Assembly (NCBI GenBank): GCA_002269645.1
Contig: NIVC01000293.1
Location: forward strand, 124,001 to 188,000
DNA from: Macrostomum lignano
Lineage: Eukaryota
Reading direction: 5' to 3'
Length of the DNA stretch: 64,000 bases
Under the pieces are notes generated by a model. It was not told the DNA's origin. It saw only the letters and a program-made list of their open reading frames with translations, and searched no databases. Shown piece after piece: positions 1,837 through 55,590 of this stretch (the first letter of the stretch is position 1; every line of letters starts with the position of its first letter). A program made the position numbers and the translations under genes.

Positions 1837-2204
1837 CAGTGGTGGGACTGAGAGGCAACCATTTTTTCGCGCCATTAAAAAATATTCGCGCCGTCCGAAA
1901 TTTCCTGCCCAGTGCCCCGCACTACTAAATTTCCTTTTATGCAGCCTTGGGGTCCCTTGTTACGAGCGTATAGTTAATTAATGGTCTATTATAAATATTT
2001 TTTTAATATCGTAAATTACGATCTTACGAATTTACTCTAATGAATGAAGTGGACACTTTTAACGAAGTTTTGACAGAGCGTCACGTTTATTTGTCATTGT
2101 CGCAAAGTAGATATACTTTTTTCGTGAAACACAAGTCCTCTCACTCACTTTCAGAAGTTTCAGTATTCGTGGTTCAGGCTCGTAGCAAAAGAAGCAGAAT
2201 AAGA

Positions 2205-2474
2205 GGTTGTATGTAAAAGACGAAGCAGATCAGATCGGTATGGAATACGGATCCATCCGTACATTGAAAGTAATGGGACCACGGATCAGTCAAAAGTATA
2301 ATAACAAATATTTAAAAACATTCTTAGTATTGGCACTTGACAGTTCTTTACATAAAATGGCATCTGCTTTCTTGCTTATTTGACTTTTGAGAAAAAAAAT
2401 CGACTTTAACACTAAATTTCGCTTATCCGTAGATCCGATGTAGATTCGATCCGCTCCGTCTTTTACATACCACC
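2205..2474. mobile_element. 270-bp MITE nested in the hAT element
   Basis: 27-bp TIRs GGTTGTATGTAAAAGACGAAGCAGATC vs GGTGGTATGTAAAAGACGGAGCGGATC (reverse complement of right end). Perfect 8-bp TSD GAATAAGA at 2197-2204 and 2475-2482. Confidence 0.9.
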
Positions 2475-2590
2475 GAATAAGATGATAAGAAATTTTATTC
2501 CTACTTATATGCGCATTAAATTCACTGTGATAACCAGTTCTAAACACAGTAGCATGGAGTCACATGGAGCATGATTGCATGAAGCGCACA

Positions 2591-4095
2591 TCAATTGTGT
2601 CTGAACTTTTTCTGCATAATACCTGCAGGCAGAGGAGTTGACACCGACTGCTCAACAGCCCGTCGCTTGAGAATGCTTTGCGCCAGTTTCTCAGACTCCT
2701 TCATCTTCTTTCGTTGCAGCTTCTCTTGTTGCTGCCGTAGTTCTTCGAGCTCCTGGTCCCTTGCTTCCTTGACCTTTGAAGACTCCGACAACAGCCGCTG
2801 AGCATCATCTCGCTGTTTCTGCTTCTGCTTGATCGCATCTGCCGTCGCATTGATAGACTTTTCCAAGTCACCATACACCTTGCTGGCACTCTTCTCACTT
2901 TGCAGCTCCATCAAAACTCGCTTCTCGAGCTCCTCTCGCTTCCGCTGTTCGTCCGCAGCCTTCTCCTCTTCCAGTCGTCGCCGATATGCAGCATCAGCAC
3001 TGGCGCACAAATTCTTCAGCCTCAAGGAGACTGGCAGTGTAGCAGCTGACCAATGCTTTGTCTGTAGGCAGGACCGCGAAACAACGAGTGCCTTGATGGT
3101 CTGCGTCCCCAGGCTGGAGCGTTTTTTCGTCACAACATCGTTTAAGTTACTAAAAATACGCTCAACTTCAGCATTGCCATGAGGCAAGACAGCTAACACT
3201 CGTGCTTTGCGCATCAGTAGAGGGCGGTTGCCAGCAGTGGCGACTTTGCTCCAGAAGTCAGTCACTGTCTCATTTGCGACTTCAGCATCACCATTGAGCA
3301 GATCGTGCTGATGAAGGCGAGCCTCGACCCGCAGGCTGTCAATATCGGCTTCTGGTACAATTGTAGGCAGCTGACTGGCTACAGTGGTAGCCCAGTGAAC
3401 GAAATGACTGTTAGATTTCTTTTTGGGGTCCAGAAGTTGGCATGCACGGAGGACTGGACTGCCAAGCGGCAAATATTCGAACAGCTTCTCGGTCCCCTTC
3501 TTAAAGAATGCCTTCACTGACTTCAAGCAAACCTGCTGGTCAGTCGCAGACATGTCTGCGAAGAGGCGCCTGGCAGGCTCACCGATGGCAATGCGAAGAG
3601 GCAGCCAGACAGTCATCCTTGACATCAAGCTTCCAGAATTTGACTGGCAGCTTTTCAGGAGCCACAAAGCACAAAAGCCAGCGGCGCGTCAGATCATTTA
3701 GTTGTGGGTAAAGGCGATGGATCTGGGTTCCTTCCTGCTGAAACAGCAACTCAAACTGCTGAAAGGGTTGCAGTACTTCAGCAAGAAAGTGCAGAAAGAA
3801 TTGCACTTTTGGATCTTGCACGTCAGCCTTCATGCTGGCAAAGTTTTCACCATGAGGTCGCGACTCGGAGAAGTACCGAATGAGCGGTTGAAGAAGTTGT
3901 AGCACGCGCTGCACAACAGACAGGAGCTGAAGCCATCTAGTTTCAACAGGCCGAAGGAAGACAAGCTTTTTAATTTCGTCAAACTCAGTGGCGATAGCAT
4001 GCAGCTTATCGCAGTCCGTGGTGGAGAATTTGAAATGGCAGTAAACATTGCGGACCAAAGTTTCCACGCGGAGACCCAACTCAGAAGCGTCGCAA
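2591..4095 (-). pseudogene. hAT transposase, N-terminally truncated, one frameshift near 3610
   Basis: Frames 3579-4079 and 2591-3667 join into a hAT-like protein: FLRPVETRWLQL (TRW motif) and VLPHGNAEVERIFS...KKRSSL (C-terminal dimerization region with catalytic E), then a charged coiled-coil tail. No N-terminal part or ATG. Confidence 0.85.
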
Positions 4096-4430
4096 GCGTC
4101 GCAAGCGTCACAAATGCCTACCTACCTACCTACCTACCTCGTAGTTACCTCCTAGCGAGTCACCACACTATATTTTGTGCAAAAAAACAGAGCTAGTGGA
4201 GTTATATTTATGTTCTGTAGGGAAGCTAAGAATGCAACCGTTCATACATCTTGCTCGATACAAGCCCAGAGCCACACTTGAAAGAAAATGAAGTTGCAGC
4301 ATAAACCGCACACACTAAATATAAATCCGCGCCATTCACACCTCAAAATCCGCACCACACCTGAAAAATCGCGTATTCGCGCCATCTTTACTGAAATTCG
4401 CGCCAGGCGCGAATTCGCGCCTCAGTCCCA

Positions 4431-5924
4431 TTACTGGCGCCAAAGGAGTCGGTGACTGCATGACCTGTGCACAAGAAGAACGAAACAGCTTGTGGAATCT
4501 AGGTAGGCACCGCTGCAGATTATAGATTGGCAGGTGGTATTGTAATTGCCCTGTCGACAAGTTTGGCAATAGTTTACGTAGTTGAAACCCGAGTTTGTCA
4601 GACTGAAACTTTTCAACCGCTGCCCTGAGCTGCTCACAATAACAGCATTTCCATTAGTTTCGAACACTGCAATCAATCCAGAGTCAATGACAGCGACACA
4701 AAAGTTCTGACTGTCCATCAGCTTCTTCACACCACCGGTGCTGATGTTTAATCGGTGTACAGCTGATGGGGTGGACAGTATTAAGCCGCGTCCTGAAACT
4801 GCTACACTCCGAGCGTCCTTCACATGATCGGGCAGCGTCAAGCTCTGCTGCAGCTCAAGCGACTCCAGAGAGAGACAGTTTACGCAACCGTTGCTGAGAA
4901 TGTACAGCTTCTCCATGTCATGAGTGAGACTTATTGGAGCTTGGCACTGCATATTCTGGACACTTCGCAACTGGGTGCCAGTCAGATCAGTCACAAATAG
5001 GGACTGATTGGTTCCAAGAAGAAATATCTGCTGAAGATGATCAACAAGTGTGCCTGAAGCTAACTGCACTCCGTTGTTACCAACGTTCCACTGGCTGATA
5101 ATTTGCATGTCTGAATTATAGACCTTGAAAAAACAATCCTGCGAATTATTACCCACACAAAAAGTGCTTCTGCTAGGGAGAGCTTCAAATCCGTTTTGCT
5201 TTGTCTTCGTGACTGCTTGAGCTGAGAAATAGTATCCAGCAGTATTGGTGCAAACAGCAGCGAGAATATAGGAACGGTTGGCCAATTTAGGCGCAATTTT
5301 TACAGTGGGCACGGCAGAGTCAAGTCTAGCTTTTAGTTTCTTATCCTCTGGATCCTCTGCCTCATCTGCAAAAGTCCTAACAGCTTGTTGCAATCTCAGT
5401 ACCTGGTGCACACTGTTGTCTACCGGATCGACAAACTCTTCTGATATCGGGACATCCTCAAGCGAGATCTGGACCTCTTGATGCAGCCTGAATCCTTTAG
5501 TTGAAACACCTTTGGCTTCCTCCTCGCCGATCTCGACCGAAAGTTTCTCTATGAAACTGAGAGCTTTCAAGTTTCGTTCCACATTGTCTATTTTGGAGTC
5601 CAATCTGCTCATCACATTTTCTCTGCACTGCTGCAATCTCTGAAAGATGGCGTCAAACAGATCAGCGGCCTCAGCTTTGTCGCTGGTCAGTTCAAACAGA
5701 GCTCCCTGGTTTGCTTTCAAGAGTTTATCTGTTTTCGATAATACCTCAGTGTTCTCTGATTTAATATCGGCGTATCTCTTTGCGAAAATCTTTTCATCTT
5801 TAGCGAGATGTCGCTTGCAGAGTTGCCCGTTCCAGTATGTTCCAAGACCTGACGAAGGCTCTGTGCAATGCGTCATGGTGCACGTCTGTGCATCTTATTC
5901 TGCATCGACGCTTTCAGTTGCCAT
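4431..5924 (-). CDS. Array family copy A1 (Zn-motif/coiled-coil/predicted beta-propeller), damaged at both ends
   Basis: Homologous ATG at 5924, but codon 10 is TAA (5895-5897); next in-frame ATG at 5876 opens 481 codons. The C-terminal VSIG is replaced by Q* by the hAT insertion; the displaced tail codons lie at ~1816-1836. Confidence 0.8.
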
Positions 5925-7997
5925 AGCTGCAAAGAGAAAACGTTAGGTATTGAACATACGAGTAATACTAATAATAACAATACTAAATGCTAATCGCTGC
6001 TGAAGTTGTTATAGGATTGATTGTTTATAAAGAAAGAATTTTTATACATGCAAGGGCTTGGGCTTGCTACCATACCATGCTGTACTGCATCGGAACCTCT
6101 CATTGCTTAATGCTTTCGGTTGGTATTGAGGTTGTACATATTTTTGCATCTAAGAATGCAAAAAATTGTCATGATTTGATGGGAAGCATTGATTCGGTGT
6201 TGAGACACTTAAGCTCCTCGGAAAGGGCTCAGTATTTCACTAAAATCCAGAGAGTTTTAATAAATTTGATGCTTATAAATGAAAACTATCTAAGAATTTA
6301 GAAAGTCATTAGCCTGACAGTTTTCATATCGTATAATCATGATAATAATTACAAAAAGTGAAAATGGGTTACCTAGTACATGTACCTAACTAAAATGAGC
6401 CCACATTTAAACTATAATGGTTACTAATTATTCAAATAACTAAGAAATGGCGATAAAAACGTTTGAAAAGAGAATTTTTTGTTACGCTATCTGCCAGTTT
6501 ATATATTGTGATTCAGAAAATACAAACTTGAAAACATATAGCAATAATTATAGTAAGGACAATAATATACCAACGGTAGATACAATCGAAGGGCGACATT
6601 TTTCATGAAAAAATAGACGAGCAAGACTGTGGAATCATAGCAAAACTTGCGAGTACTGGAACAAAAACAGAAATGCGTTAAGGTTCAAGAACAGTAAAGC
6701 AAGCTATAAAACATTATTTTAATTGTCGCTTAATTTCAGCACTAGATATTACAAAGTCGGTAAACATCAGAGTTTACTACCATCGAACTTCGAAATCTGA
6801 AGTTTTTTGAAGAAGGCTTCCTCACTCACAACCAAAAGCCCCCTGCTGCTTGCGCAAAAAAATTTCTGCCAACGCAAGGACCAAAATTTTCGAATATACG
6901 CGCACTTTCTATAGAGATTGGGATTGGTTGCTTGCACAAATTTATGTCAAGTGAGATTTTGTTAATATGAAGTTTATGAGATCATAAATTTTGACATCGT
7001 TAAGTCAGGCGATTTAACAAGTTGAAAAGTTATGGAGTGTGAAACCAACAACCTTCAGACAAGAGAGGTAAATACCTACGGCACATAGGTAGGTAGCAAC
7101 CTAACAAAACTTTCCTCATGACCTTTCTGTTATTTGAGTACCTTAACAGGTCGTTATCGAAAGTGATATATGGAATTAATAAGAATCATATGGCCACAAA
7201 ATTCTGGATTAACTGCTCAAAACTAGAAAAATAACTATTAAAATAATTTTCTAACTTCTAGACCAAAGCTATATATTTATGCATATCTATACGCTTGTAT
7301 AATGGAAAACGATTCTAAACAACAATTGGGTACTTAAAAAATAATAGCATAAACGTTAAATAGTTTCCGACAGTAGTAAAGTAGAAAAAGCTGTAGCATG
7401 TCTTAGTGAATACTTTCGGAAAATTTTGGGAATGCCAACACCACATTCCTAGCATAAAAGTATGTTTTCACATTGGTAACACTAAGATAGCACCGGACAT
7501 CGTGTTGGCTTATTTATCAATTAGAGTGAGCAAACAAAAGTACATATTAAAAATCCCAAACACCAATCGTCTTCTGTTCTAAATTGGACAGCTTAATTTA
7601 AAAAAGCATAAGAGCTATGCAGAAAGGTTGAAATGCTGAAATAAGATGGAATCTAAGGTTTATACTCATGCACACAGCCAGTAGCGTAGCCAAGGTCAAG
7701 AGGGGCTTAGAGTCCTGACAGAAAAGCTGATAGGAACATGAATTTCTAATAGCCAATGAATAACGCAAGTTTTTATAAGGTACAAAAACACTAAAGTTGT
7801 ATGGACTATAGAAATTCCTATTAATCTTATTTGTACCGCCATTCAGCTATATCGGCTGTCTCAACACAAAGCCAAGAGATCAAACTAGAAATGTATTGAC
7901 ACTCCCTATCATCAAATAAGTTTAAAACTCGGTAGCCCAGTTGAAAAAAACTTTCACTGTTTACAAAGTTTTAGTACTAGTAGGGCTGACTGACTTC
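5925..7997. repeat. Duplicated intergenic block, homologous to ~26570-29338
   Basis: Shared segments such as gcttgctaccataccatgctgtactgcatcg, agtcctgacagaaaagctgataggaacatg and gacactccctatca; the second copy carries extra SINE and MITE insertions. Confidence 0.9.
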
Positions 7998-8059
7998 TGA
8001 TATCAACCGAAAGTTTCTCTGCACAGCTGAGAGACCTCTGGATCTGCTCCATATCTGCA

Positions 8060-8416
8060 ATATTCGAGTCTAATCTACCAAGCAAGCACTTTCTCCCTGC
8101 ACTCATTCACTCTTTCAAGGACATCATCAAACAGGTCAGCCGCCTCAGCCCGGTCAGTCGTCAGCTCGAATTAAGCAGCTTTAGCGCGGTTTGTGAGCTG
8201 CAAAACACTAGCGAGTATCGAATTAGTTTCCTTCTTAATGCTGGCGAACCGACTTTTAAACTGATGTTTGTCACTCTCCAGATGCTCAGCGCAGAGGCCG
8301 GCCCAATAGTGTCCGCGGCCCGAAGCCGGGCTCTGGCAGTGGCTGAGGCTGCACAGTCGGCTTGCTGGTCGATCCTGCTCGTCGCTTGTTGCGCTTGATT
8401 TACGTTTTGTTGCCAT
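8060..8416 (-). pseudogene. Array family copy B1, 5' fragment with in-frame stop
   Basis: MATKRKSS...LCSLSHCQSPASGRGHYWAGLCAEHL...NRAKAA*FELTTDRAEAADLFDDVLE matches the family N-terminus; TAA at 8171-8173; similarity lost near 8060. Confidence 0.85.
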
Positions 8417-9750
8417 CGCTGTAACGTTTATCTGCATAGTTTTTACAAAAAATTGAATTTTATGGTGTTAATCGAAAAGTAATTTACCGAAAACAGCTAA
8501 AAAATTAAACAATATTTCTCCAATTTTAGCCATATCATCAGTTAGCACCAAAATTCACATTTTTTCTACACACCAATAGTTAATATCATATGTATCACAC
8601 TGGGGACAATTCAGACTAGGGACAATTTTGTCTATGGCTAAAACTTGCTTCGGTTGCATAATGTTTTGAACTGGGGTTTGTTGTCCCAGTCTGAATTGTC
8701 TGAATTGAATTTTCGCTAGTTTTTTTAGAACTGGACTTTGTTCAAAATTGAACGTGAAAAGTGTTTTACTTCCGTCACAAGTTGTCGTTATATGTTAAAT
8801 TTGTTATTTCTAGGAAAACACTAAATCCAGAATCTTAGTCTAGGACTCCTTGAATTATGCAAGTAGTCCTGGTAGCAGTGTCGAGTGGCAAACACTGGTC
8901 TACATGTACTTTAATTTATTGATTATTACTAAATTTCTATACTTATTTATCCAGTCCTAAGTACAGGCTGTCCTGGGAAGGAGTTGCCCGACTAATCGAC
9001 CGCTTGTTTGCTTCTTACAGCTTTTCTCTCTTTCTGCTTTCTAGATACTGAGCCAACACGATTTGCTTTCTTAAAAACCGAATCAGAGAAACGGCGAACG
9101 AAGGAAAAACTGCCCGAAAACGCTTGTATTTATAGTCTTGATAACGGAGGATGGGTGCGAGGGTCGTGAATAAACAATTTTCTTTAAACTATTATAACAA
9201 AAATAACTTCCCCGAATATAAAAATCGAACTATTCAAACAAATATCCTATTTAAACAAATTTGTAACTAAGCATAATTTGGCGGGAATTTAAAAGATAGA
9301 TGTGCGCTAATATTAAAATAACGAGCCTGCCTCAGCTGAAATGCATAATTCGACAGACTGCCACTAATTGTCACTCAATAGATTGGTCACCTTTTAACTG
9401 GAGTTACATACAAGTGTAATAGCTGATAACAATGTATTAACGAAATGAGGTGAAAATAAACCAGCTTTAAAGGAAATCCGGTCAGTACTGTCTGTTTTTG
9501 AGACGGTTGACAGCTAGAGTACTGTGTATTTTAGCTAAGTAAAATTCAAAAAAGGTTTTGTGAAGAAAGCTGCACCAAAATAAATACAAGCGTAAAAGTA
9601 AACGATACATGTAACATTAAAGACTGACTAGATTAAAAGCGAAAAATGTCACAACTACCAACAAAAAATCAAATAATAATTAGCTCAAATTTTGCAAAAA
9701 AACAAGGTGTACCACAAATCTATTATTACTGCAAGTGCAGGTAACTAATA

Positions 9751-12747: not shown

Positions 12748-14331
12748 TTAACCAATAGAAACGCGGCCAAGGAGTTGGTGATCGCATGACATGTACGCAA
12801 GAATAACGAAACAACTTGTGGAACCAAAGTAACCATCACCGCAGATGATAGATTCGCAGGTACTACCAGCGACATTGAACCCACACAATCGGCATTTTTG
12901 TTGCAGATTGTCAGCACTCTGTCTCATACAATTTGGGCAGATATAGCTAGATCGACAAGTTTGGCAATAGCTCACGTAGTTGAAACCAGAGGTTGACAGA
13001 CTCAAGCTTCTCAACCGCTGCCCTGAGCTGCTCACAAAAACCACATTTCCATTAGTTTCGCAGACTGCAATAAATATAGAGCCAATAACAGCGATACAAA
13101 AGTTCTGACTGTCTATCAGCTTCTTCACACCACCGGTGCCGATGTTTAATCGATGCACAGTTGATGGAGTAGCCAGAATTAAGCTGCGTCCTGAAGCTGT
13201 TACACTGCGAGCGTCCTTCACATGATCAGGCAGCTTCAAGCTCTGCTGCAGCTCAAGCGACTCCAGAGAGAGGCAGTTCACACAACCGTAGCTAAGAATG
13301 TACAGCTTCTCCATGTCATGAGTGAGGCTTATTGCAGCTTCGCACTGCACATTCTGGACACTTCGCAACTGGGTGCCAGTCAGGTCAGTCACAAATAGGG
13401 ACTGATTGGTTCCAAGAAGAAATATCTGCTGAAGGTGATCTACAAGAGTACCTGCAGCTAGCTGCACACCGTCGTTATTAACGTTCCACTGACTGATTAT
13501 TTGCATGTCTGAATTAAAAACCGAGAAAAACCAATGCTGGAAACTATTATTGTTAGCCACACAAAAAGTGCTTCCGCTAGGGAGAGCTTGAAATCCGTTT
13601 TGGTTTGTCTTCGTGACTGCTTGAGCTGAGAAATAGTATCCAGCAGTATTGCAGCAAACAGCAGCCATACGATAGCGTACATTGTTGGCCAAATTAAGCG
13701 CCACGTTAACATTGGGCACAGCAGACTTAAATCTACTTTCTCGCTTCTTATCCTCAGGATCCTCAGCCTCGACGGCCACAGTTTCAACAGCCTGTTGCAA
13801 TCTCAGTACCTGGTGCACGCTGTTGTCTACCGGATCGACAAACTCTTCTGATATCGGGGCATCCTCAAGAGAGATCTGGACCTCTTGATGCAGCCTGAAT
13901 CCTTTAGTTGAAACACCTTTGGCTTCCTCCTCGCCGATCTCGACAGAAAGTTTTTCTATGAAACTGAGAGCTCTCAAATTCTGCTCCACATGGTCTATTT
14001 TAGAGTCCAATCTGCTCATCACATTTTCTCTGCACTGCTGCAATCTCTGAAAGATTGCGTCAAACAGGTCAGCGGCCTCAGCTCTGTCGCTGGTCAGTTC
14101 AAACAGAGCTCCCCGGTTTGCTTTTAAGAGCTCGTTCGTCTTTGATAATGGTTCAGTGTTCTTTGATTTTATATCGGCGTATCTCTCCTCGAAAATCTTT
14201 TCATCTTTACCGAGATGCCGCTCGCAGAGTTGCCCGCTCCAGAATTTGCCAAGACCTGACGACGGCTCCGTGCAATGCGTCATGGTGCACGTCCGTGCGT
14301 CGGTATCTGCATCGACGCTTTCAGTTTGCAT
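12748..14331 (-). CDS. Array family copy A2, intact 527 aa
   Basis: Uninterrupted ORF with C-x4-C-x15-C-x2-H near the N-terminus, helical/coiled-coil middle and beta-rich C-terminal half; carries an extra CPNC...CRLC insertion; a polypyrimidine-AG precedes the ATG by 2 nt. Confidence 0.92.
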   Translation of the reverse strand: MQTESVDADTDARTCTMTHCTEPSSGLGKFWSGQLCERHLGKDEKIFEERYADIKSKNTEPLSKTNELLKANRGALFELTSDRAEAADLFDAIFQRLQQCRENVMSRLDSKIDHVEQNLRALSFIEKLSVEIGEEEAKGVSTKGFRLHQEVQISLEDAPISEEFVDPVDNSVHQVLRLQQAVETVAVEAEDPEDKKRESRFKSAVPNVNVALNLANNVRYRMAAVCCNTAGYYFSAQAVTKTNQNGFQALPSGSTFCVANNNSFQHWFFSVFNSDMQIISQWNVNNDGVQLAAGTLVDHLQQIFLLGTNQSLFVTDLTGTQLRSVQNVQCEAAISLTHDMEKLYILSYGCVNCLSLESLELQQSLKLPDHVKDARSVTASGRSLILATPSTVHRLNIGTGGVKKLIDSQNFCIAVIGSIFIAVCETNGNVVFVSSSGQRLRSLSLSTSGFNYVSYCQTCRSSYICPNCMRQSADNLQQKCRLCGFNVAGSTCESIICGDGYFGSTSCFVILAYMSCDHQLLGRVSIG

Positions 14332-14695
14332 AGCTGAAAAGAGAAAATATTAGCTAGTAAATATACGAGCAATACTAAATATGTATAAATAATGAATTCT
14401 AGGCGCCGCTGAATCTGTGTTATGGCCCTGATTTTATAAAAAACTAGTCAACATATTTTTAATCCAAATGGCGATAGTAGAATACGGTTAATGCATAGAC
14501 ACATTCGAGAAATTGTTGAAGCTTAGGCGTTTAAATATGATGCCCTAATTTTGAGTCATAAAAGTTATTAGTTAAAATGCATTGCAGCATTACTGAAAAT
14601 CAGGTGACTAGCTACTTTCGTGTTCTAATTTATCAACGGTTCCGTTTTGTAGCTCGTAAAACTAAAACTTGTGTAAACTTATTCAAGCTGGTAAG

Positions 14696-16259: not shown

Positions 16260-16620
16260 AGCAGACAGTGCTTCCAGTTTCTCACGCAGTCTCTCAATAA
16301 AAAAGGCTACTGTCCACTGGATCGACCCGTTATTTAAAACCAGTGCACCTCGAACCGATATCTCATGCTTCAACCTAGTTTGGAGACTGGAGGCTGCCAA
16401 CAAGATTTCTTTGTGACTCCGTAACTCTAGTTTCAGCTAAAATATTTTCTAGAAAAACTGTCTGACCCTCATATGCTCAGTATGAATTTACAAATCCACT
16501 CTACTCATAACCTACTCTGCAGTGCTGCACACTTTCAAGATTAGCGTTAAACAGGTCAGCTGCTTCAGCATTGTCACTTATTAGCCCGAGCTGAGCAATA
16601 TTGGCATGTTTAATAGTAAG
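16260..16620 (-). pseudogene. Highly decayed array family copy
   Basis: LISDNAEAADLFNANLESVQHCR matches LTSDRAEAADLFDAIFQRLQQCR; further downstream RLKHEISV and VDPVDSS occur in shifted frames. Confidence 0.75.
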
Positions 16621-16799
16621 ACTCATTTTATTTGCACCTCGGTGCAAGTAAATGCTGCGACCTCCCTGTGGTGAAGTTGAAGAGCTGCGGTGGCCAACAG
16701 AGGCAGAACAAAGCGACGGCAGTGGAGCGAACGTCGGCGTATTGAGCGGACGTGCAGGCAGCCGGTCTAGCAGGATGACCTCAGCAAGCGAGGGCAGAG

Positions 16800-17100
16800 C
16801 TGGAGAGGCTCCGTAAGAGCAGACGGCCAACTTAAGAGGCGGAGGAGGCGCTGGAAGCTGTCTACCTGCAGCGGCAACAGACAGCTGTTGACGACGCCAT
16901 CCCGGCCGCCACCGGCGCTGGACACAAAGCCAAAGGGCGTGTTACCTGGTCCGCCATCAACGCTCTGACTGGGGCGAAAGCGGCGCATCCCGCTCAACCT
17001 GGCTGGCGACACTCCAGATAAGCGCAGAAATGAGCTGCGCGAGTTCTTCGCTATCATCATCAAGGCGCCCCCGCTGCCTAACAATCTGAGGCTGCTTAGC
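16800..17100 (+). mobile_element. Probable decayed non-LTR retrotransposon ORF2 fragment
   Basis: Broken reading EAEEALEAVYLQRQQTAVDDAI...GRVTWSAINALTG(R)KRRIPLNLAGDTPDKRRNELREFF resembles the endonuclease-RT linker region of LINEs. Recognition from memory; not searched. Confidence 0.45.
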
Positions 17101-19899: not shown

Positions 19900-21640
19900 A
19901 GAAAAAGTAATAACTAAGATGTACAGCTCGTCCAAAATCAAACTGAACTGCAAACAAGCAAACTCTAAAGTGCAAATAAAACGGAAGATTTTTAACTTAT
20001 TCTATAAATTTTTGCATAAACATAAATTTGACTAAGCAAACATAAACTTTAGTAGGCTTGCAAATACAAAAATAACTTCATATTTTACTTTCAAGACCAT
20101 ACTATAACTTAAAAACCAGCCAAAGCAATACAGTGAGTGACATCTCCGGTGGATATTAGTGACTACTTTTCAGATAATAATCGTACAAAAAAATACGGAA
20201 AAACTGCTTTGAGTTTTGAGTTTTTAGTAAAATATTGTACACTGAACTTAGATTATTTATGATCATGGGCACGTCAAAAAAAGTCGAAGGTTGAAACCGC
20301 TTAACCACAGCTATGTATATTACTATATTAAAACAGCGAACATCTGAAACGAGGTAACAGCTCAATATTCACCAACAGTAACGCACCCAAGGAGTCGGTG
20401 ACAAAATGGCATCTGCACAATAATAACGAAACAGCTTCTGGAATTTAAATAGGCTCCGCAGCCGATAATATAGTAGGTGACAGTATTCGTACTACGCTGT
20501 GCACTAGCTTGACTATTGTGATTCAATTTAAAACCAGAGTTTGACAGAGTGAAACTTTTTAACTGCTGCCCTGAGACATTCTCAGCTAGTCTGCCCATGA
20601 GGTTTGCCCATTATGTAAGCTTGATACGAAAAATCGGACATATTTGCAACAGAATGTTCATAGTCACTTGGTGTAACCTGTTGAAGGTGCCGACGGCGTC
20701 CGGGTGTTGACGGAATGCTCAAGAGACTAGCTGAGGATGTCCAGCAGTTGATTCTTGCCCGCTGTCGAGGCTTGATCAGTGAATCTAGAGAAATTCTAAT
20801 CAGGCTGTCCATAGTCACCTGGTGTCATCTGTTGAAGGTCCAGAAGCTCCGCCTGGGTGAAGGCTAGTGACCAACGAAGACAGAGCTGATGCAGACACAT
20901 GTGGTCGACGTGCTGTTTAAATTTGGAGACTTGGCAAGGCTGCACTGAGGCGCAGTGCTGATTGGCGCACAGGGGTGTACTGAATACACTAGCGCTTATG
21001 GGAAAAATCCGACCTTCAGGTAGAATCGTCGAATATCTCGACGGTCCGGAGGGCTGGCGACTTGATTCTTGTTTGAGAATGTGCGCAACAAAAAGTTAGT
21101 CCGTGTTCTTGAATTTCGTGTGCCTGCGTTGCTTCGTTCGGCGCAGCAAAAAAATTGTCTTTGATTCCCCCCCCCCTCTTGGTAGTTCTACCGTTAAGGT
21201 CTTCAGTTCACTTTAGAATCAATCAATGCAATGCAGTAGCCATTGGCGAAAGTCTGCTGGCGTAGTGACAACTTACATTATGTTAAAACGCATTTCCGAT
21301 AAATACATTTATATGATTTAAATCCTGACCAATTTAAAAAATATACCGGGCTTGATGACCAACATATCAAAAAGAAGACGCGGTTTGAGAACAAATGACC
21401 GGAAAACATCTTAAGATCTTAAAAATCTCAAAACATCTCAAAAATTGCAAGCAAAATTGTGGGGTTTTGTTGTACGCTCGTAGATGTTGCAGTTAGCTTC
21501 ATCTATAAAGCTACTTGTCTTCGATAAATTTTAAACTGTGTCGTTAGTTAGCTTTTTCGAAATGATACCTTACTAGAGTAAAGTAAAAGTCTGAACAAAA
21601 CTGCATAACAGCGACTGGATTAACCAATAGAAACGCGCCA
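19900..21640. repeat. Second copy of the 1-1836 block; its left flank (~18850-19900) is also homologous to ~9600-12350
   Basis: See 1-1836. Further shared motifs: gatagctggtcggacca at ~10605 vs ggtagctggtcggacca at ~19370, and gggaaatatggtt at ~12058 and ~19790. Confidence 0.9.
20362..20581 (-). pseudogene. 3' fragment of array family gene (copy P0'), duplicate of 553-772
   Basis: SGQQLKSFTLSNSGF...PFCHRLLGCVTVGEY*. Confidence 0.85.
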
Positions 21641-23130
21641 AAGGAGTCGGTGACTGCATGACCTGTGCACAAGAAGAACGAAACAGCTTGTGGAATCTAG
21701 GTAGGCACCGCTGCAGATTATAGATTGGCAGGTGGTATTGTAATTGCCCTGTCGACAAGTTTGGCAATAGTTTACGTAGTTGAAACCCGAGTTTGTCAGA
21801 CTGAAACTTTTCAACCGCTGCCCTGAGCTGCTTAAAAAAACAGCATTTCCATTAGTTTCGAACACTGCAATTAATCCAGAGTCAATGACAGCGACACAAA
21901 AGTTTTGACTGTCCATCAGCTTTATCACACCACCGGTGCAGATGTTTAATCGATGTACAGCTGATGGGGTGGACAGTATTAAGCCGCGTCTTGAAACTGC
22001 TACACTCCGAGCGTCCTTCAAATGATCAGGCAGCTTCAAGCTCTGCTGCAGCACAAGCGACCCCAGAGAGAGGCAGTTCACGCAACCGTTGCTAAGAATG
22101 TACAGCTTCTCCATGTCATGAGTGAGGCGTAGTGGAGGTTGGAACTGCACATTATGGACACTTCGCAACTGGGCGCCACTCAGGTCAGTCACAATTAGGG
22201 ACCGATTGGTTCCAAGAAGGAATATCTGCTGAAGATGATCGACAAGAGTACCTGAAGCTAGCTGCACTCCGTTGTTCTTAACGTTCCACTGGCTGATAAT
22301 TTGCATGTCTGAATTACAGACCATGAAAAACCAATACGGCGAATCATTAGCCACACAAAAAGTGCTTCCGCTAGGGAGAGCTTGAAATCCGTATTGGTAT
22401 GTCTTCGAGACTGCTTGCGATGAGAAATAGTATCCAGCAGTATTGTTACAAACAGCAGCGAAAATATATTGATACGAAACATTGGCTAAATTAGACACAT
22501 TTACTTTGGGCACGGCAGACTCTATTCTAGCTTTTAGATTCTTGTCCTGGACTTCAGGATTCTCGGCCTCAGCGGCCATAGTCTCAACAGCCTGTTGCAA
22601 TCTCAGTACCTGCTGCACACTGTTGTCTACCGGATCGACAAACTCTTCTGATATCGGGGCATCCTCAAGCGAGATCCGGACCTCTTGATGCAGCCTGAAT
22701 CCTTTAGTTGAAACACCTTTGGCTTCCTCCTCGCCGATCTCGACCGAAAGTTTCTCTATGAAGCCGAGAGCTCTCAAGTTCTGCTCCACATTGTCTATTT
22801 TAGAGTCCAATCTGCTCATCACATTTTCTCTGCACTGCTGCAATCTCTGAAATATTGCGTCAAACAGGTCAGCGGCCTCAGCTCTGTCGCTGGTCAGATC
22901 AAACAGAGCTTCCCTGTTTGCTTTTAACAGTTCATCAGTCTTCGACAATACCTCAGTGTTTTTTTTTTTATATCGGCGTATCTCTTTGTAAAAATCTTGT
23001 CATCTTTAACGAGATGTCGATCGCAGAGTAGCCCGCTCCAGAATTTGCCGAGACCGGACGAGGGTTCCGTGCAACGCGTCATGGTGCACGTCTGTGCATC
23101 GGATTCTGCATCGACACTTTCAGTTGCCAT
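21620..23130 (-). CDS. Array family copy A3, full length except a 1-nt frameshift in a T-run at 22959-22969
   Basis: MATESVDAESDAQTCTMTRC...RYADIKK (from 23130) continues in another frame as ...SKTDELLKANREALF...LLWRVSIG*. The run has 11 T where paralogs have 12 nt. Confidence 0.85.
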
Positions 23131-23299
23131 AGCTAAAAAGAGAAATAACAAACATAGTATTAGCTATTAAACATATAAGAAATACAATATTGTCTTGATA
23201 GTAAGATACACCGGTTGTGCCAACAGAAAACTCTGTATATTATTTGCAGATAGCTGCTCTTCGTAGCAGTACAATGTTGCATTAGAAACAGAGAGAAGG

Positions 23300-26469: not shown

Positions 26470-26568
26470 CTCGCTCCAAAATTTGCCGAGAACGGATGAA
26501 GGCTCTGTGCAACGCGTCATGGTGCACGTCTGTGCATCGGATTCTGCATCGACGCTTTTATTTGCCAT
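26470..26568 (-). pseudogene. Array family copy A4, 5' stub
   Basis: MANKSVDAESDAQTCTMTRCTEPSSVLGKFWS then abrupt loss of similarity; the upstream acceptor and flank are retained. Confidence 0.85.
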
Positions 26569-29411: not shown

Positions 29412-30935
29412 CTAGCAGATAGACACTCGCACTAAAACGCGATCGTTGCACGACAAGCTGCATATCAGCAGAAAGGAGCTCGAAGATTCTCGGCTGGCGC
29501 CACAGCAGCTAATTGACTGCAGAACATACGATACACCACAGTTAGCACACGTCTTGAGATAGTTTACGCCTAGTGGCACCAGATCAATCACTTTAATCAG
29601 TTGTCTGTTGCTGCTAAGAAGTGCAACGCGGCCATTATTTTCGCAGGCAGCCAGAAATCCAGATCCAATGTCTGCAACGCACAGCACATTTTGACTATTG
29701 CTCTGCCAGACTTTTACGCATCTTTTCGTGCTGAGACTCATTCGATACACTGCTGACTGGGTGGCCAGTATTAAACTACGACCAGAAACTGTCATATGAC
29801 GAACATTCGCAGTGTCTTTCGAGAGTTTCATGCTATCCTGAAGTTCGCAAGTGTCCAGCGACAGGCAGTTTATGCAGCCATCACCGAGAATGTACAGCTT
29901 CTCCATATCGTTGACTATGATCGGCATTTCAGCTTGAAACTGGACATTGTCAATAGTTCGAAGCTGTGTACCAGCTAGGTCCGTCACAATCAAAGAATTG
30001 TTATTACCAAGCATATAGATTTGCTGCTGGTGATGCACAAGAGCTGCAGACACTAATACAACATTGTTCGATGGCTGATTTCTTTGGCTAAGTACCACGA
30101 GTTCGTTGCTATAGAAAGCGATATGCCAGTTCGCACCATAGTTACCTACTGCAAGTACGCAGGAGCTTGGCAAAGCCTGAAAGCCATTCTGTTGCGTCTT
30201 GGAAACCAGCTGAGCGGAGTAAAAAAATCCATCCGTACGATTGCAGTTGAAAACGAATTGGATGTAGTTTGTAAGAAGAACATTGGCAGTTGGCACAGCT
30301 GACTCCAGCAAAGATCGCATTGCTGCCCCGTCTGCATCCTCGGCAATTGCAGCTCGAGTCTTTGTCTCCTGCAGCAGCTTCTGGACCAGTTCAACGCTGC
30401 TGTCAACTGGATCAGTCCAAGCATCGGAAATGGGAGCATCCTCAAGTGCGAGTTGCATCTTCTTGCTCAACTGGAAACTTTTAACAAGATCGCCAGACAT
30501 TTCAGTCCCGTTGATATCTGCTCGAAGCTTTTCAAAGAAGTGCAACGACTTCAGACTGGCGTCCATGCTGTCGATCTTGGCGTCCAGCCTGCCAATGACG
30601 GTACTGCGGCAGCGCTGGACAATCTCGAGAATCTCTTCAAACATGTCTGACGCATTGGCTCGGTCGCTGGTCAGCTCGAACAGAGCGCCGCGCGTCAAGT
30701 CCATCTGCTCGGCAACGCGGCGCATTGCACCATCGATGTTCGCCTGACGATAAGAGTAGTAGCTCTCTCGGAATCGATCGGCGTCTCGCTTCAGATGGGC
30801 GGCGCACAAGGGCCCGTCCCAGTGGCTGCCCTGACCAGCAGCGTCTTGGCCACAGTTAGGCAGACTGCAAACATCGTGCTGCTGCTTGTTGTCGCCTTGC
30901 TGCTTTCCTGACGTTGCTTTTTTGGCAGAAGACAT
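29412..30935 (-). CDS. Array family copy B2, intact divergent paralog, 507 aa
   Basis: Uninterrupted ORF. Shares C-x4-C-x15-C-x2-H, ALFELTSDRA, LEDAPIS..DPVD, QNGFQALPS, LIVTDLAGTQLR, DMEKLYIL and the terminal RVSI with the A copies. Confidence 0.92.
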   Translation of the reverse strand: MSSAKKATSGKQQGDNKQQHDVCSLPNCGQDAAGQGSHWDGPLCAAHLKRDADRFRESYYSYRQANIDGAMRRVAEQMDLTRGALFELTSDRANASDMFEEILEIVQRCRSTVIGRLDAKIDSMDASLKSLHFFEKLRADINGTEMSGDLVKSFQLSKKMQLALEDAPISDAWTDPVDSSVELVQKLLQETKTRAAIAEDADGAAMRSLLESAVPTANVLLTNYIQFVFNCNRTDGFFYSAQLVSKTQQNGFQALPSSCVLAVGNYGANWHIAFYSNELVVLSQRNQPSNNVVLVSAALVHHQQQIYMLGNNNSLIVTDLAGTQLRTIDNVQFQAEMPIIVNDMEKLYILGDGCINCLSLDTCELQDSMKLSKDTANVRHMTVSGRSLILATQSAVYRMSLSTKRCVKVWQSNSQNVLCVADIGSGFLAACENNGRVALLSSNRQLIKVIDLVPLGVNYLKTCANCGVSYVLQSISCCGASRESSSSFLLICSLSCNDRVLVRVSIC

Positions 30936-32406: not shown

Positions 32407-35400
32407 CTAGGTATCCTCTACAGCAGCGCCAGCCAGCGGCATCTCCTGGCGTCTCCGCTTGAGCAGACTTCGCCGCAGGCGGGCCTCTCGTTTCTCCAAC
32501 TCTTTGCGTCGACGTTCCTCGCGAAGTCGTCGAAATAATTCCGACAACAGTCGGATGCTCTCCAGCTTGCGTTGAGCGGCCACAATGCGACGCTCCTCGG
32601 CGGCAATTCGCGCCGCCAGAGCCGCCTCCTCGGCTCGACGTTGCCTCTCGGCAGCGCGCTCAGCGGCGCGCTCCAAACGGCGCCGTTCCCGATCGCGCCG
32701 ACGACGCTCAAGTTCGGCGGCCGCCTCGGCCCGACGTCGGGCGGCTTCTCGACGACGAATGGAGCGAAGGGAGAGGCGGCCGGTTCGGTCGAAGTCGAGA
32801 GTTGGCAGAACCGACAGCGCCGCGGGGGCGGATGACGAACCGTCGGACTGCGTTATTATAAATAAATTATAAAACACATTAATTCGTTAAGGTTACATCA
32901 AACAAACTATGTAACCTTAGATCCTAAAACTAAAAAGATGCCTAAAAGGTTTAAAATGCCGCCACGTGCAACTGACTATTGAAATGAAAATGAAAATTGA
33001 CCAGGTTTTCGTGTTATTTACACACAAGAGCCAGCATCCCCCCACAAGTGTGACGATTTGAAAGTCAAAGTCAAAGTGCCGCTTTATACCATTGTATGAG
33101 TACGTGTCTGTTATCCACATATTGACGTATTTCACACTTGTATACCCGATCCCGATGAAAACGGTACCTATAGGCCAAGAAGCCGTTTGAGAGTCGTTGA
33201 AGGTAACACAGGTATAAAATAGGAATAGGACTTGAGACGACTCTATACAGACGATATGTCACGGTACAAGTCGCCAAAAAGTCGTCAAAGTGTCAATTTC
33301 AGGCTTTGCTTTTCTTGTCTGCGACTCGGAAACGACTCTGCAAGAGATAACAATAGGGCGCTTCTACAATGACTTTGGGGCCGTAGAATTGTATCCAAAG
33401 CGTGCAAGAGTCGCTGAGTTGCGTCCGACGTGCATATGTGCAGCTGTATGAAATAAACGTATTTCGCATTGATATTTATAACAACTCTATTTAGTCTACT
33501 TAAGTTAAGTAGACAGTTAAGCGCTATACACAACGACTCTTAACAGCTTTTTTTGTAACTCTAAAGATTTTGCAGTTCACATCATGCATTCAGGACTCAA
33601 CAGTTGCCTCTCTGTCGCATTGCAGTCGCTTGAGTCTTTAAAGAGTCGCATTAGAGTCACTACAGTCATTAGTGAGGTGTGTGCAATGGCTCTAGCGATT
33701 CTTGCATACATGCGCAACTGCTGGCCGACCTGGCCGATCTGGCCATTGTAAATTGCGGTGGACCAGGGGTAAGTCACAAAAATGCCCAGCCTAAAAAATA
33801 GACGTAGTACTAATTAGATGACGAAGCATTTAGCCCTTATAAGACAGTCATAGTTACTCCTGCCGTTTACCCGAAATTGCGTTAGGTTTCTTTTACAGGT
33901 AACTTGGTAAGTCGCATGGCCAGTGTAAATCAGGGGGGTTGCGCATGTATGGATTCTTGTCACGGTAACGTTGTTCTGTATGCTTTGCAGGCTTAAGAGA
34001 CAATCTTTGCTTTTAACTTAGTAATTCGCTTCAACAAGCAAAAGCTGAGGACACGACCCCAGCCTCAGTAATGATAAGTAAACCTGTACCATCTAAATCA
34101 TTATTACTCAATGCGAAAGACAAAAGAATAATGTATAAATCCTTGTTTCAACCAAGCAAATATCTTCCTGGCTCGAACATTTGCCTCTTTCACTCTCGCT
34201 ATTCTTTGATTCGAATAGATTGTCCGAACCTAACTAAACCACCCAGATTAAAAAAATAGATACTTCAAACCCCATGAAAGGATAACCGATCCTCTCCTTA
34301 GAACAGATCAAACTATCGGTTCACCCCAAACAACAGAAACTTATAACAAACTTAAGCTAATTGAAACTTCGTACTTGGAATATCATAAATATAATCTTGT
34401 GATTGCATCATCAGAACAAGGGACACAGTAGTGAGAATGTCCAGAAGACCAAGGAAGGAAACCCAAACATAACATAACAAAATATTTCGCTACTCAGAAA
34501 AGCCCTCACCGAACCGAGCTGTGCCGGCATCAGCAGCAGCAGCAGTTTGGCACCACGAAGCGCGGTCATGCACCGCTCGAATCCGGCGCAATCGACAAAC
34601 TGGACGAAAGCTTCGAACCGGCCCAGAGGACCCGGAGCAGCGGCAGCAGTAGAAGCAGCAGAAGCAACAGAAGCCGAACCAGATTCCGAATTCAACAATG
34701 GAATATCAATTCGTCGAACAGCGCCAAACGATTCGAAAGCCGATCGAACAGCCGATTCAGTTGGCAGATCGACTGAAGCACCACTCGGCTCAGCAATTTG
34801 TTGCGATTGACCTGCTGAGAGGCCTGGGACATCGTCTGAGAACCATGAGCAGGGCAATTGGCCAATACGAACTGTGTCCGGTCGTTCGCCTGGCTCCATG
34901 GCGTCCAGACCCTGTTGACGTATTTGGAAAGCAAAGTAAACATTGACCATACTTATATAGTTTATCCTTTGCGAGTTGGGGATGGGAGCTTCAGAAACCT
35001 GAGACCCGAAAAATCACAACATCAAAAGCCACTTACCATCATAAACCAGAAATATCATAACATAGAAAATCATCTTTTGCTAGAATTTTCGGCGCTATGT
35101 TATTTCGGGTTTATGATAACGACCTCTTGCGACAGACGCAGGCACAGTTCACATAATGGCCCTGATCGAATTTTGCATCGTCAAGAATGTACACTTTCTG
35201 TGCTATGGGGGTTGGACCTCATGTGCAAGAATCGCATCAAGCAATATCCACGCCAATGTTTCGTAAGCCTTGAATGGCAGAGAATCGAATCCGGGACATC
35301 TTTGGCGAATTTGACTCGCAATTTACGGTCTCAATGCTACCAAAGCGTTCATAAAAAGGGTTCATCAGAACAGCTCAACTCGGGCGAAGACAAATGACGA

Positions 35401-37084: not shown

Positions 37085-37500
37085 GAAGACAAGACGCATG
37101 ATTAAGTTTACCTGGAAGAGGCACCTGATAGAGTTTACCTGGAAGAGGCACCTGATTGAGTTTACCCGAAAGAGACATCTCATTGAGCTTTCCTGGAATA
37201 GAGCCACTTGATTGAGTTTACCTGGAAGAGACACCTGTTTGAATTTACCTGGAAAAGAGACACCTCATTGAGTTTACCAGGACAAGAAACATCTCATTGA
37301 GTTTACCAGGAAAAGTAAAACCTGTTTGAGTTTACCTGGAAAAGAGACACCTGTTTGAGTTTACCTGGAAAAGAGACACCTGTTCGAGTTTACCTGGAAA
37401 AGAGACACCTGTTTGAGTTCACCTGGAAGAGACTCCTGTTTGAGTTTACCTAGAAGAGACACCTGTTTGAGTTTACCTAGAAGAGACACCTGATTGGGTT
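37085..37500. repeat. Minisatellite, ~27-29-bp unit TGAGTTTACCTGGAA(A)AGAGACACCTGTT, roughly 14 copies
   Basis: Direct tandem periodicity; period 29 at 37321/37350/37379. Confidence 0.95.
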
Positions 37501-55100: not shown

Positions 55101-55590
55101 AGATGTTTTCTTCGGAGTGGTAAGCATCCAGGAGAATTGTTAACTGTTCCCAATTTTCTTCTTCATAATATTTTGAAGACAGTGGGGGTATATAGGAGTT
55201 TATTAAGGTAAAGCTTTTGTTTTTATCCTTTTTGTGTTTAAAATTTAGTGTCAAGAAGTTTTTATAATGTTTGAATGATTCTGTAACATTGTATTGTGTA
55301 TCTAGTGACTTTTTGTAAGCTGTTAATAATCCACCAGAAGCTCTGCCAATGAATTTACAGCCTTTTTTGTTTGCAGGCTTTTGGTATGTCATGTAGTTTT
55401 CAGACAGGTTGTTGATTTTGAGTCGCTTGTTTTCATTTTTTGTGTCTATTATCCAAGTTTCTTGAAGGCAGAGAATATTATTCTTAAAAATTGATTCAGT
55501 TTCCAGTAGTTCAAGTTTGGGAATCATCACAGAGTCTTTTATTGTGTAAAGTCCATTGATATTCCAGCTGCTAATAGTAAATCTAAAAGT
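52189..55590 (-). mobile_element. Non-LTR retrotransposon ORF2 (APE + RT + C-terminal Cys/His motif), uninterrupted; clade not resolved
   Basis: Frame is open from FTISSWNING (~55585). LQETW, GDFNA, SVIDL, SDH; APGHD, YRGI, FVDYEKAFD, GVLQGNPLS, LFADD, YLG; CKMC...H..C. AT-rich, no ORF1 seen. Confidence 0.93.

Follow-up and report, generated by a model that had tools for sequence, protein, structure and literature searches.

A predicted RING-less TRIM-NHL relative in Macrostomum lignano and an island of divergence at its coiled coil–propeller junction

In TRIM-NHL proteins such as Drosophila Thin/TRIM32, Brat and Mei-P26, and TRIM71/LIN-41, TRIM2 and TRIM3, a coiled coil is followed by an NHL-type propeller; the canonical genes are conserved, single-copy post-transcriptional regulators. 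TRIM5alpha/TRIM22 and the finTRIM and bloodthirsty-like genes of fish are tandem lineage-specific TRIM expansions with patches rich in insertions/deletions (indels) and substitutions in the C-terminal recognition domain (B30.2/SPRY). Hypervariable propellers of the WD40 type occur in the fungal NWD/HET-E/HET-D STAND proteins, where variation falls at a few fixed positions of each WD repeat and arises via repeat-unit exchange. Here, we analyse a tandem gene array in a 64 000-nucleotide stretch of the flatworm Macrostomum lignano (assembly GCA_002269645.1, contig NIVC01000293.1, positions 124,001 to 188,000 of the forward strand), hereafter the window, in which all positions are counted from its first letter. 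The array lies on the minus strand and contains four long intronless open reading frames (ORFs), A1–A4, with fragments of further copies interspersed. A2 (12748..14331, minus strand), the only fully intact copy among A1, A2 and A3, encodes 527 residues with a predicted zinc knuckle, coiled coil and β-propeller. A short variable block at the junction of the last two, block 1, consists for the most part of old sequence, an island that has escaped homogenisation by gene conversion between paralogs, and a few codons in or beside it show a suggestive excess of replacements.

The A-type family shares with TRIM-NHL proteins the succession of a coiled coil and an NHL-type propeller, and its knuckle, coiled-coil and propeller core is also found in the M. 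lignano proteins P0037, which has a RING, and P0036, which has a B-box annotation. It differs from TRIM-NHL proteins in having no RING, no recognisable B-box and NHL repeats too divergent for Pfam, and its genes are intronless, tandemly amplified, Macrostomum-restricted and fast-evolving (gene-wide omega, the ratio of non-synonymous to synonymous rates, dN/dS, of ∼0.57). A conserved coiled-coil scaffold with short variable patches in the C-terminal domain recalls TRIM5alpha, TRIM22 and finTRIM; however, the C-terminal domain is a predicted propeller and not B30.2/SPRY, a RING is missing, the region-wide omega above 1 that marks out the loops of those proteins was not found and no link to immunity is known. 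As in the NWD/HET-E/HET-D proteins, propeller variation is reshuffled among paralogs by recombination or conversion while scaffold residues are kept, but here it is located in the first strand with its entry segment and in one loop, and the blades are mutually dissimilar. Divergence islands in gene-converting families, such as the peptide-binding exons of the major histocompatibility complex (MHC), likewise combine raised dN and dS with a homogenised background at the same structural position, although the A-type comparison is between paralogs and duplicated genome copies and not between alleles.

A2 was modelled with AlphaFold2 (AF2), and the run with 33 family sequences gave the better of two models (mean predicted local distance difference test score, pLDDT, of 72.7, with 80–93 across most of the propeller). 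Near the N-terminus, a putative zinc knuckle C-x4-C-x15-C-x2-H (Cys15, Cys20, Cys36 and His39 in A2; 14215..14289, minus strand) occupies the B-box position of TRIM proteins. Its four ligands are the only near-invariant N-terminal residues among 19 diverse members, and in an alignment with P0037 the motif falls in the stretch that follows the RING. The helical region (13726..14223, minus strand) has a layout like that of a TRIM coiled coil, with helices assigned by DSSP in the AF2 model at residues 37–138, 141–157, 170–189 and 195–202; the longest comprises 102 residues and the three shorter ones reach residue 202, with pLDDT of 76–89 for residues 11–160 and 56–65 for residues 161–200. About 25 β-strands are predicted between residues 218 and 526, a count that fits six blades. 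A Pfam scan of A1–A4 gave nothing above threshold and only sub-threshold propeller matches (CNH and Utp8). In particular, A1–A4 have no Pfam match to a RING, and A2 has 14 residues ahead of the knuckle; they have no Pfam match to a B-box either, with four ligands compared with 7–8 in B-box zinc fingers. The distant relative P0037 does carry a RING.

A relation to NHL domains emerges at the profile level. A 19-member profile matches the NHL domains of Thin (E = 1.3e-20), TRIM71 (1.2e-17), TRIM2, TRIM3 and Brat, with E values ranging from 1e-20 to 1e-6, and distant family members score just under the Pfam NHL cut-off. In hhalign comparisons the core matches P0037 at 98.9% probability, starting just after the RING of the latter, and P0036 (UniProt name 'B box-type domain-containing') at 100% probability. 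Model and profile together support a β-propeller in the C-terminal half that is probably NHL-related. The NHL-profile matches, the hhalign matches to P0037 and P0036 and the four-ligand knuckle are the grounds on which we regard the family as a RING-less TRIM-NHL offshoot with a degenerate B-box, i.e. as an uncharacterised relative predicted to consist of a knuckle, then a long coiled coil and then a propeller of the NHL type.

For the analysis of variation, A-subfamily copies were codon-aligned, ten at first (three from the window and seven from elsewhere in GCA_002269645.1) and later 12 (from the window and loci L001–L005). In A2, block 1 (VNVALNLANNVRYRMAAVCCN; residues 208–228; 13648..13710, minus strand) corresponds to a low-confidence entry segment and the first predicted propeller strand, and block 2 (CVANNNSFQHWFFSVF; residues 257–272; 13516..13563, minus strand) corresponds to a hairpin loop between two propeller strands. 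The spacer between the blocks (TAGYYFSAQAV...STFC; residues 229–257; 13561..13647, minus strand) has low synonymous divergence. Upstream of block 1, the last linker helix (residues 196–202; 13726..13746, minus strand) occurs in two forms, LKA..D/E or RES..K, which are shuffled among the copies. The interval 13520–13760, to which a sequence-only reading of the window had drawn attention, thus runs over the final part of the helical linker, block 1, the conserved spacer and block 2. The near-invariant stretch that this reading had set beside the blocks (FQRLQQ...FVDPVDNSV) was located in A2 at residues 94–172 (13816..14052, minus strand).

The pattern itself is real. All six peptide strings with which the sequence-only reading had illustrated the two blocks are present exactly. 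A1, A2 and A3 are near-identical over the coiled-coil stretch, with 3–4 differences in 79 residues, and differ with indels in both blocks (dN of 0.23–0.33 in block 1 and 0.22–0.26 in block 2 versus 0.025–0.042 in the coiled coil); the indels are in-frame in all three copies. Variability is strongly clustered by an entropy permutation test: among ten copies, block 1 is the most variable run of 12 columns in the protein (entropy of 1.22 bits versus 0.30 overall), a value that none of 5000 column permutations reached. Block 2 takes fifth place (0.63 bits). Just as variable as block 2, but overlooked, are the linker upstream and, within the last 80 residues, three further patches, one of which is a 24-residue Cys-rich insertion described below. 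The description of the variation as rich in aromatic and charged residues fits only loosely, the alternatives being R/S/I/F/L, V/R/F and Q/E/Y in block 1 and D/H/Y, C/W and K/S/M in block 2.

Substitution rates were estimated with our own Goldman–Yang-type codon likelihood, comprising model M0, region-wise and site-wise alpha (synonymous) and beta (non-synonymous) rates and the site models M1a and M2a. A first MAFFT codon alignment was dropped, as it produced a falsely 'selected' serine (column 205, block 2) through misalignment of AGT with TCG and inflated the differences in block 1 for A3-type copies; manual re-alignment raised the log-likelihood by ∼50. Gene-wide omega is 0.56–0.58. The coiled coil has an omega of 0.21–0.22 [p of ∼1e-12 to 1e-14 by likelihood-ratio test (LRT)], a relative synonymous rate of 1.1–1.16 and a dS among A1, A2 and A3 of 0.20–0.26. 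Because the low omega comes with a normal synonymous rate, the conservation of the coiled coil reflects strong purifying selection and not recent homogenisation.

A dN/dS above 1 across the blocks, by which the sequence-only reading would have recognized diversification, was not found at the region level. Omega is 0.75–1.03 in block 1 (95% profile interval of ∼0.5–1.95) and 1.2–1.4, not significant, in block 2, compared with ∼1 in the spacer, 0.53 in the rest of the propeller and ∼0.95 at the C-terminus. The relative synonymous rates of these regions are far from uniform, at 2.0–2.1 in block 1 (p = 0.004), 0.23 in the spacer (p = 0.001), ∼0.75 in block 2, ∼0.8 in the rest of the propeller and ∼1.1 at the C-terminus. 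In four independent sister pairs, the ratio of non-synonymous to synonymous differences per site (pN/pS) is 0.73 in the blocks versus 0.53 elsewhere (p = 0.48). One pair, A3 and L002_13405, shows seven non-synonymous and no synonymous differences in the blocks, which is not significant because 79% of the sites are non-synonymous.

Since synonymous divergence is doubled in block 1, most of its 'hypervariability' stems from a gene tree that is locally deeper, or from a local effect on mutation, and not from protein-level selection alone. Between A2 and its positional counterpart L005_3109, the linker and blocks show a pS of 0.32–0.49 and a pN of 0.21–0.23, and the spacer shows no difference of either class. 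The island is seen again in a distant subfamily, on two other contigs, in the pair P0008/P0041, which are ∼17% identical to A2 and 94% identical to each other. There it covers residues 191–233 (L006 3571-3699 and L007 3571-3699) with a nucleotide identity of 82% versus 96% overall; over these homologous 43 codons pS is 0.33 versus 0.056 (p = 1.5e-4) and pN is 0.14 versus 0.016 (p = 5e-8), with a similar ratio of the two classes (p = 0.29). We conclude that block 1 is mainly an island of old sequence left un-homogenised by gene conversion. Possible causes are selection against homogenising a specificity determinant and a self-reinforcing barrier to conversion formed by mismatches and indels. 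The four-fold synonymous deficit of the adjoining spacer (29 codons) could mark a recent conversion tract common to many copies or a constraint at the nucleotide level.

Site models add a signal of a different kind. For the whole gene, M2a is preferred over M1a with an LRT of 28.6 on the first alignment and 16.7 on the manual one. The trees of four partitions conflict, with A2 pairing with L002_20721 in three of them and with L004_4169 in the third partition, which indicates gene conversion between paralogs. When each partition is given its own tree, significance is confined to the one with the linker and blocks (columns 121–260; LRT of 18.3 for n = 10 and 19.4 for n = 11), with ∼13% of its codons in a class with an omega of ∼3.8; across the fits with LRTs of 13.5–19.4, the positive class of M2a has an omega of ∼3.8–4.1 and holds 9–13% of codons. 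About half of the signal for omega above 1 is carried by linker columns 138, 140 and 143. The distribution of the two linker forms conflicts with the local tree, in that the sisters W_4434 and L003_9671 carry different forms, and the two-form pattern is therefore probably recombinational. The share of block 1 is seen when the linker is left out (LRT of 10.3 for n = 10 and 13.5 for n = 11). Once both block 1 and linker columns 137–146 are removed, the LRT falls to 1.04, which leaves block 2 without any share in the selection signal. The signal survives re-alignment and the removal of gap-adjacent columns. As a null, 68 data sets were simulated under M1a with three conflicting trees and passed through the same pipeline; the LRT has a 95% quantile of 9.2 and a maximum of 10.7 in these mosaic data sets, 17% of which exceed the nominal 5% cut-off of 5.99. 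The observed values of 13.5–19.4 lie above all 68 simulations.

The best candidate codons are A215, V218 and R219 in block 1 (13675..13689, minus strand; M2a posterior of 0.92–0.99), the last of which is S/R/I/F/L among the copies, and N285 at a strand end (13477..13479, minus strand; G/N/K/Y among the copies; posterior of 0.88–0.97). The variable positions of block 1 alternate with conserved scaffold codons (V208, N217, C226 and N228), which have undergone many synonymous changes and no replacements (p = 0.003–0.049). As these codons changed only synonymously, block 1 was under selection while it diverged. Taken together, the sequence comparisons are suggestive of positive selection at a few codons in or beside block 1. 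The proposal of diversifying selection is thus retained in part, in the form of a site class with omega above 1 whose best sites are in or beside block 1; it does not extend to block 2, which has no such signal, or to the regional omega, which does not exceed 1.

Block 2 appears to vary by a different process. At the DNA level its length variation reads GCT AAT (AAT)(AAT/AGT) TCG (NNNSF at 13540–13554), and its indels are, as judged from these repeats, AAT/AGT triplet slippage of an asparagine/serine run, with a few substitutions in addition, in a segment that evolves approximately neutrally. The loop proper (residues 262–265) sits between predicted strands 254–261 and 266–272, and its length varies by 0–20 residues across the wider family. 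In the AF2 model, residues 201–213 have low confidence, and the first propeller strand (residues 218–226) is opened by V218 and R219; four further strands lie between it and the block 2 loop. Strand parity in the model suggests that residues 215–219 are on one face of the propeller and that the block 2 loop and N285 are on the other, so that a single diversifying face formed by both blocks is not supported by the model.

The observed architecture, homology, mosaicism, rate pattern and recurrence in a second subfamily are accounted for, with a somewhat better than even chance in our judgement, by a TRIM-NHL-derived family mixed by gene conversion, in which block 1 is a divergence island containing a few replacement-rich codons and block 2 is a slippage-prone loop. 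At the protein level, this account would involve dimerisation, ligand binding and selection that maintains the island. If TRIM-NHL proteins are a guide, the coiled coils would most likely pair into an antiparallel dimer whose two propellers bind RNA or protein and, as the RING is absent, the proteins would act as adaptors or sequestering factors without E3 ligase activity of their own. Frequent conversion between paralogs would even out much of the gene, and the junction (the last linker helix, the entry segment and the first strand, with block 1) would escape homogenisation, raising both classes of difference several-fold. The excess of replacements at A215, V218, R219 and N285 would then reflect selection for diversity at a contact point, the variable junction might tune the partner bound or the orientation of the propeller, and block 2 would be a surface hairpin tolerant of changes in length. 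A more specific version, in which these are flatworm-specific diversified recognition molecules (in immunity, self/non-self discrimination or reproduction) with specificity residing in a swappable junction module that is kept diverse and exchanged by conversion, is unlikely, if conceivable; it would make them the propeller equivalent of the variable B30.2 loops in TRIM5 and finTRIM proteins.

A number of points weigh against the divergence-island account. In the literature search, no paper was found that names these genes or gives them a partner, an expression pattern or a phenotype. A2 alone matches no Pfam NHL model and, in a phmmer search of PDB sequences, no NHL structure. Foldseek searches with both AF2 models returned generic propellers only (Gbeta, BamB, Atg18, CNH and WD40; TM of at most 0.47), which is why no family is assigned from the fold, and the C-terminal 80 residues are modelled poorly (pLDDT below 50 for residues 446–507). 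On the side of selection, no region-wide omega is significantly above 1, and in per-site fixed-effects likelihood tests no codon of block 1 reaches 0.05 (p = 0.11–0.16; 0.08–0.16 for the candidates overall). The codon models are our own code with fixed relative branch lengths, applied to 10–12 sequences that include several near-identical pairs; recombination is evident inside the tested partition, and the null simulations represent one mosaic design only. Part of the signal could also be relaxed constraint, because disabling lesions are present in A1 and A3, i.e. in all but one of the three window copies.

The same lesions are among the grounds for a purely neutral explanation, in which the blocks are the least constrained loops of a family in turnover and partly in decay, shaped by drift and slippage, and the class with omega above 1 is an artefact of recombination or misalignment. 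In its favour, the regional omega is ∼1 in both blocks, the linker and the C-terminus, and the sister-pair pN/pS of the blocks (0.73) does not differ from that of the rest; A1 and A3 are disabled, block 2 of L003_2875 (L003 2875-4290) is interrupted by a stop, and a deletion has removed sequence across the linker and block 1 from the A3 counterpart in L001 (∼13.7 kb); and both blocks lie at sites of family-wide indel tolerance. The inflation of the LRT under the mosaic null (17% above 5.99) and the misaligned serine of column 205 show how such a class could arise. However, the LRTs of 18.3–19.4 (13.5 without the linker) beat all 68 mosaic-null simulations and persist without gap-adjacent columns, the scaffold codons of block 1 change synonymously only, and ORFs of 440–530 codons stay open. 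Drift alone also leaves unexplained the doubled synonymous rate of block 1 against the four-fold reduction in the spacer, and the island in the second subfamily. We regard neutral decay as a real possibility, though not a probable one. It is improbable that, as proposed at the outset, both blocks form one ligand-binding face of the propeller under diversifying selection in the manner of TRIM5alpha or finTRIM loops. Variability that clusters next to a coiled coil under strong conservation, tandem lineage-specific expansion and a class with omega above 1 centred on block 1 would all suit it, as would the seven-to-none pair A3/L002_13405, but this pair is not significant, the regional omega does not exceed 1, block 2 varies by slippage with no selection signal, and strand parity in the model puts the hot codons of block 1 and the block 2 loop, five strands later, on opposite faces.

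Directed diversification, by local hypermutation or templated cassette replacement, would raise the synonymous and non-synonymous rates of the island together, as is seen, and paralog fragments and retroelements with reverse transcriptases (RTs) are present in the window. None of the window's paralog fragments spans the variable blocks (residues 200–280), though, and substitutions in block 1 span all four bases with no adenine bias, on which grounds a mechanism like that of diversity-generating retroelements and donor cassettes were rejected. The retroelements are ordinary long interspersed nuclear elements (LINEs) and long terminal repeat (LTR) elements, some of them frameshifted, and ordinary conversion between full paralogs accounts for the mosaic; directed diversification is accordingly very unlikely. 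Least credible of all is an artefact in which mis-assembly of collapsed genome copies or alignment error mimics hypervariability. Assemblies of this species are redundant and it is reported to be a hidden polyploid (PMC5730564, PMC10468722), the A3 frameshift lies in a homopolymer and MAFFT aligned block 1 of the A3-type copies poorly, but blocks 1 and 2 of A2 are identical in L002_20721, those of A3 are near-identical in L002_13405, frame is kept through every indel, and the results are stable under the alternative alignment and without gap-adjacent columns. The divergence island in a conversion-mixed, TRIM-NHL-derived family thus remains the explanation that we favour.

The family appears to be confined to Macrostomum. 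The best matches of A2 are M. lignano hypothetical proteins only, and a profile search of 1.84 billion representative proteins gave 38 clusters at 50% identity; ten of these were looked up and are from M. lignano except for one unnamed marginal match, P0038 (E = 4e-5), a generic WD40 protein by Pfam. A second search with the 19-member profile added one new protein, P0053, which led to a fourth related locus. A lineage-specific tandem expansion is present, with four copies and fragments within 31 kb of the window and at least 12 A-type copies over four related loci. A literature search for Macrostomum NHL proteins, or for a TRIM-NHL expansion with positive selection, found nothing. The window is syntenic with three contigs of GCA_002269645.1 at 93–97% identity, with an AKAP17A-like gene, A4, A3-type and A2-type copies in common order. 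This synteny fits the documented redundancy of the assembly and the hidden polyploidy reported for M. lignano (PMC5730564; PMC10468722). Gene models of the Mlig_3_7 assembly were cut from RNA-seq-based transcripts (PMC5730564), and such models exist for five or six family members near the array locus. Upstream of the ATG in all copies is the minus-strand motif TTTCTCTTT(T/G)(T/C)AGCTATG (at ∼14332–14350, 5925–5940 and 23131–23150). The polypyrimidine tract and AG (TTTTAG) before each ATG look like a splice or spliced-leader acceptor; trans-splicing is common in M. lignano. Given the acceptor-like motif and the RNA-seq-derived models, expression of family members is plausible.

The copies of the array differ in their state of preservation. 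A1 (ORF 4431–5876, or 4431..5924 with the N-terminal part; minus strand) has its ancestral ATG at 5922–5924 and a TAA at codon 10 (5895–5897), and its remaining ORF is open over 481 residues. Its last four codons have been replaced by the end of a 2.6 kb hAT-type transposon (1837–4436) with an 8 bp target-site duplication GCGCCAAA (at 1829–1836 and 4437–4444), inverted ends CAGTGGTGGGACTGAG / CTCAGTCCCATTACTG and ORFs containing a hAT dimerisation domain. The empty site is kept at A3 (∼21635–21642), and the transposon end is the source of the new 'Q-stop' of A1. A3 (ORF 21620–22948, or 21620..23130 with the N-terminal part; minus strand; ancestral ATG at 23128–23130) has a 1-nucleotide deletion in a poly-A run (within 22951–22977) that puts the first 58 codons out of frame with the ORF of 442 residues. 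A homopolymer sequencing error is not excluded here, and the counterpart P0002 (contig NIVC01000829) is intact. A4 (29412..30935, minus strand) is a divergent paralog, ∼43% identical to the others and conserved between genome copies (pS = 0.0145, pN = 0.0059). An N-terminal fragment of a 'B-type' paralog (7984..8437, minus strand), found by tblastn between A1 and A2, has an intact form of 517 residues elsewhere (L003 13754-15304). Fragments of family members, which are N- or C-terminal pieces, were observed at 562–765, 7984–8437, 16387–16830, 20371–20598 and 26473–26568. The lesions are recent, as the long downstream ORFs are still open, and with its duplications, transposon hits, stops and frameshifts the array is turning over by birth-and-death evolution. 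A further difference between copies is a 24-residue Cys-rich insertion (CPNC...CRLC; residues 465–488; 12868..12939, minus strand) placed from the alignments in the segment with pLDDT below 50. It is found in A2 and its closest counterpart (L002 20721-22319) only and is absent from A1, A3 and L005_3109; with its flanks it reads C-x2-C-x5-C-x2-C-x11-C-x2-C and looks like a zinc knuckle.

Long ORFs are few in the window as a whole, where LINE and LTR retroelements, the hAT transposon and satellites are also present. Exons of the AKAP-17A-like gene (32407–34950, minus strand), which encode an RNA-binding domain (Pfam PF25015, E = 2.6e-13), flank the array, as they do in contigs NIVC01000254 and NIVC01000829. 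A non-LTR retrotransposon at 38889–42591 (plus strand) is decayed, its endonuclease, RT and RNase H being split over three overlapping frames, and another at 52189–55530 (minus strand) has an intact endonuclease–RT ORF of 1113 residues and lies in an AT-rich stretch (∼33–36% GC) with a strong GC skew of ∼+0.21. An LTR-retrotransposon integrase fragment (56729–57496, plus strand) has Integrase_H2C2 and rve domains. A satellite with a 15 bp unit (GGGGCTTTAGCACCA; ∼123 copies) occupies 62150–64000, runs off the end of the window and creates spurious long ORFs on both strands; others are located at 60623–61454 (23 bp unit, ∼36 copies) and 37092–37500 (29 bp unit, ∼15 copies).

What the array means for M. 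lignano depends on the cause of the island. If it is neutral, this would be an ordinary fast-turnover orphan family in a duplicated, transposon-rich genome, and the main use of the analysis would be to identify ∼40 clusters annotated as 'hypothetical protein' as derivatives of TRIM-NHL proteins. If selection maintains the island, an NHL-type propeller would serve as the variable module of an expanded TRIM-like family, in place of the B30.2/SPRY, leucine-rich repeat or immunoglobulin modules, in a tractable, regenerating flatworm for which RNA interference and transgenesis exist. With this junction hot in two subfamilies whose identity is below 20%, the family would offer a clean case of conversion and selection acting together on a short specificity determinant.

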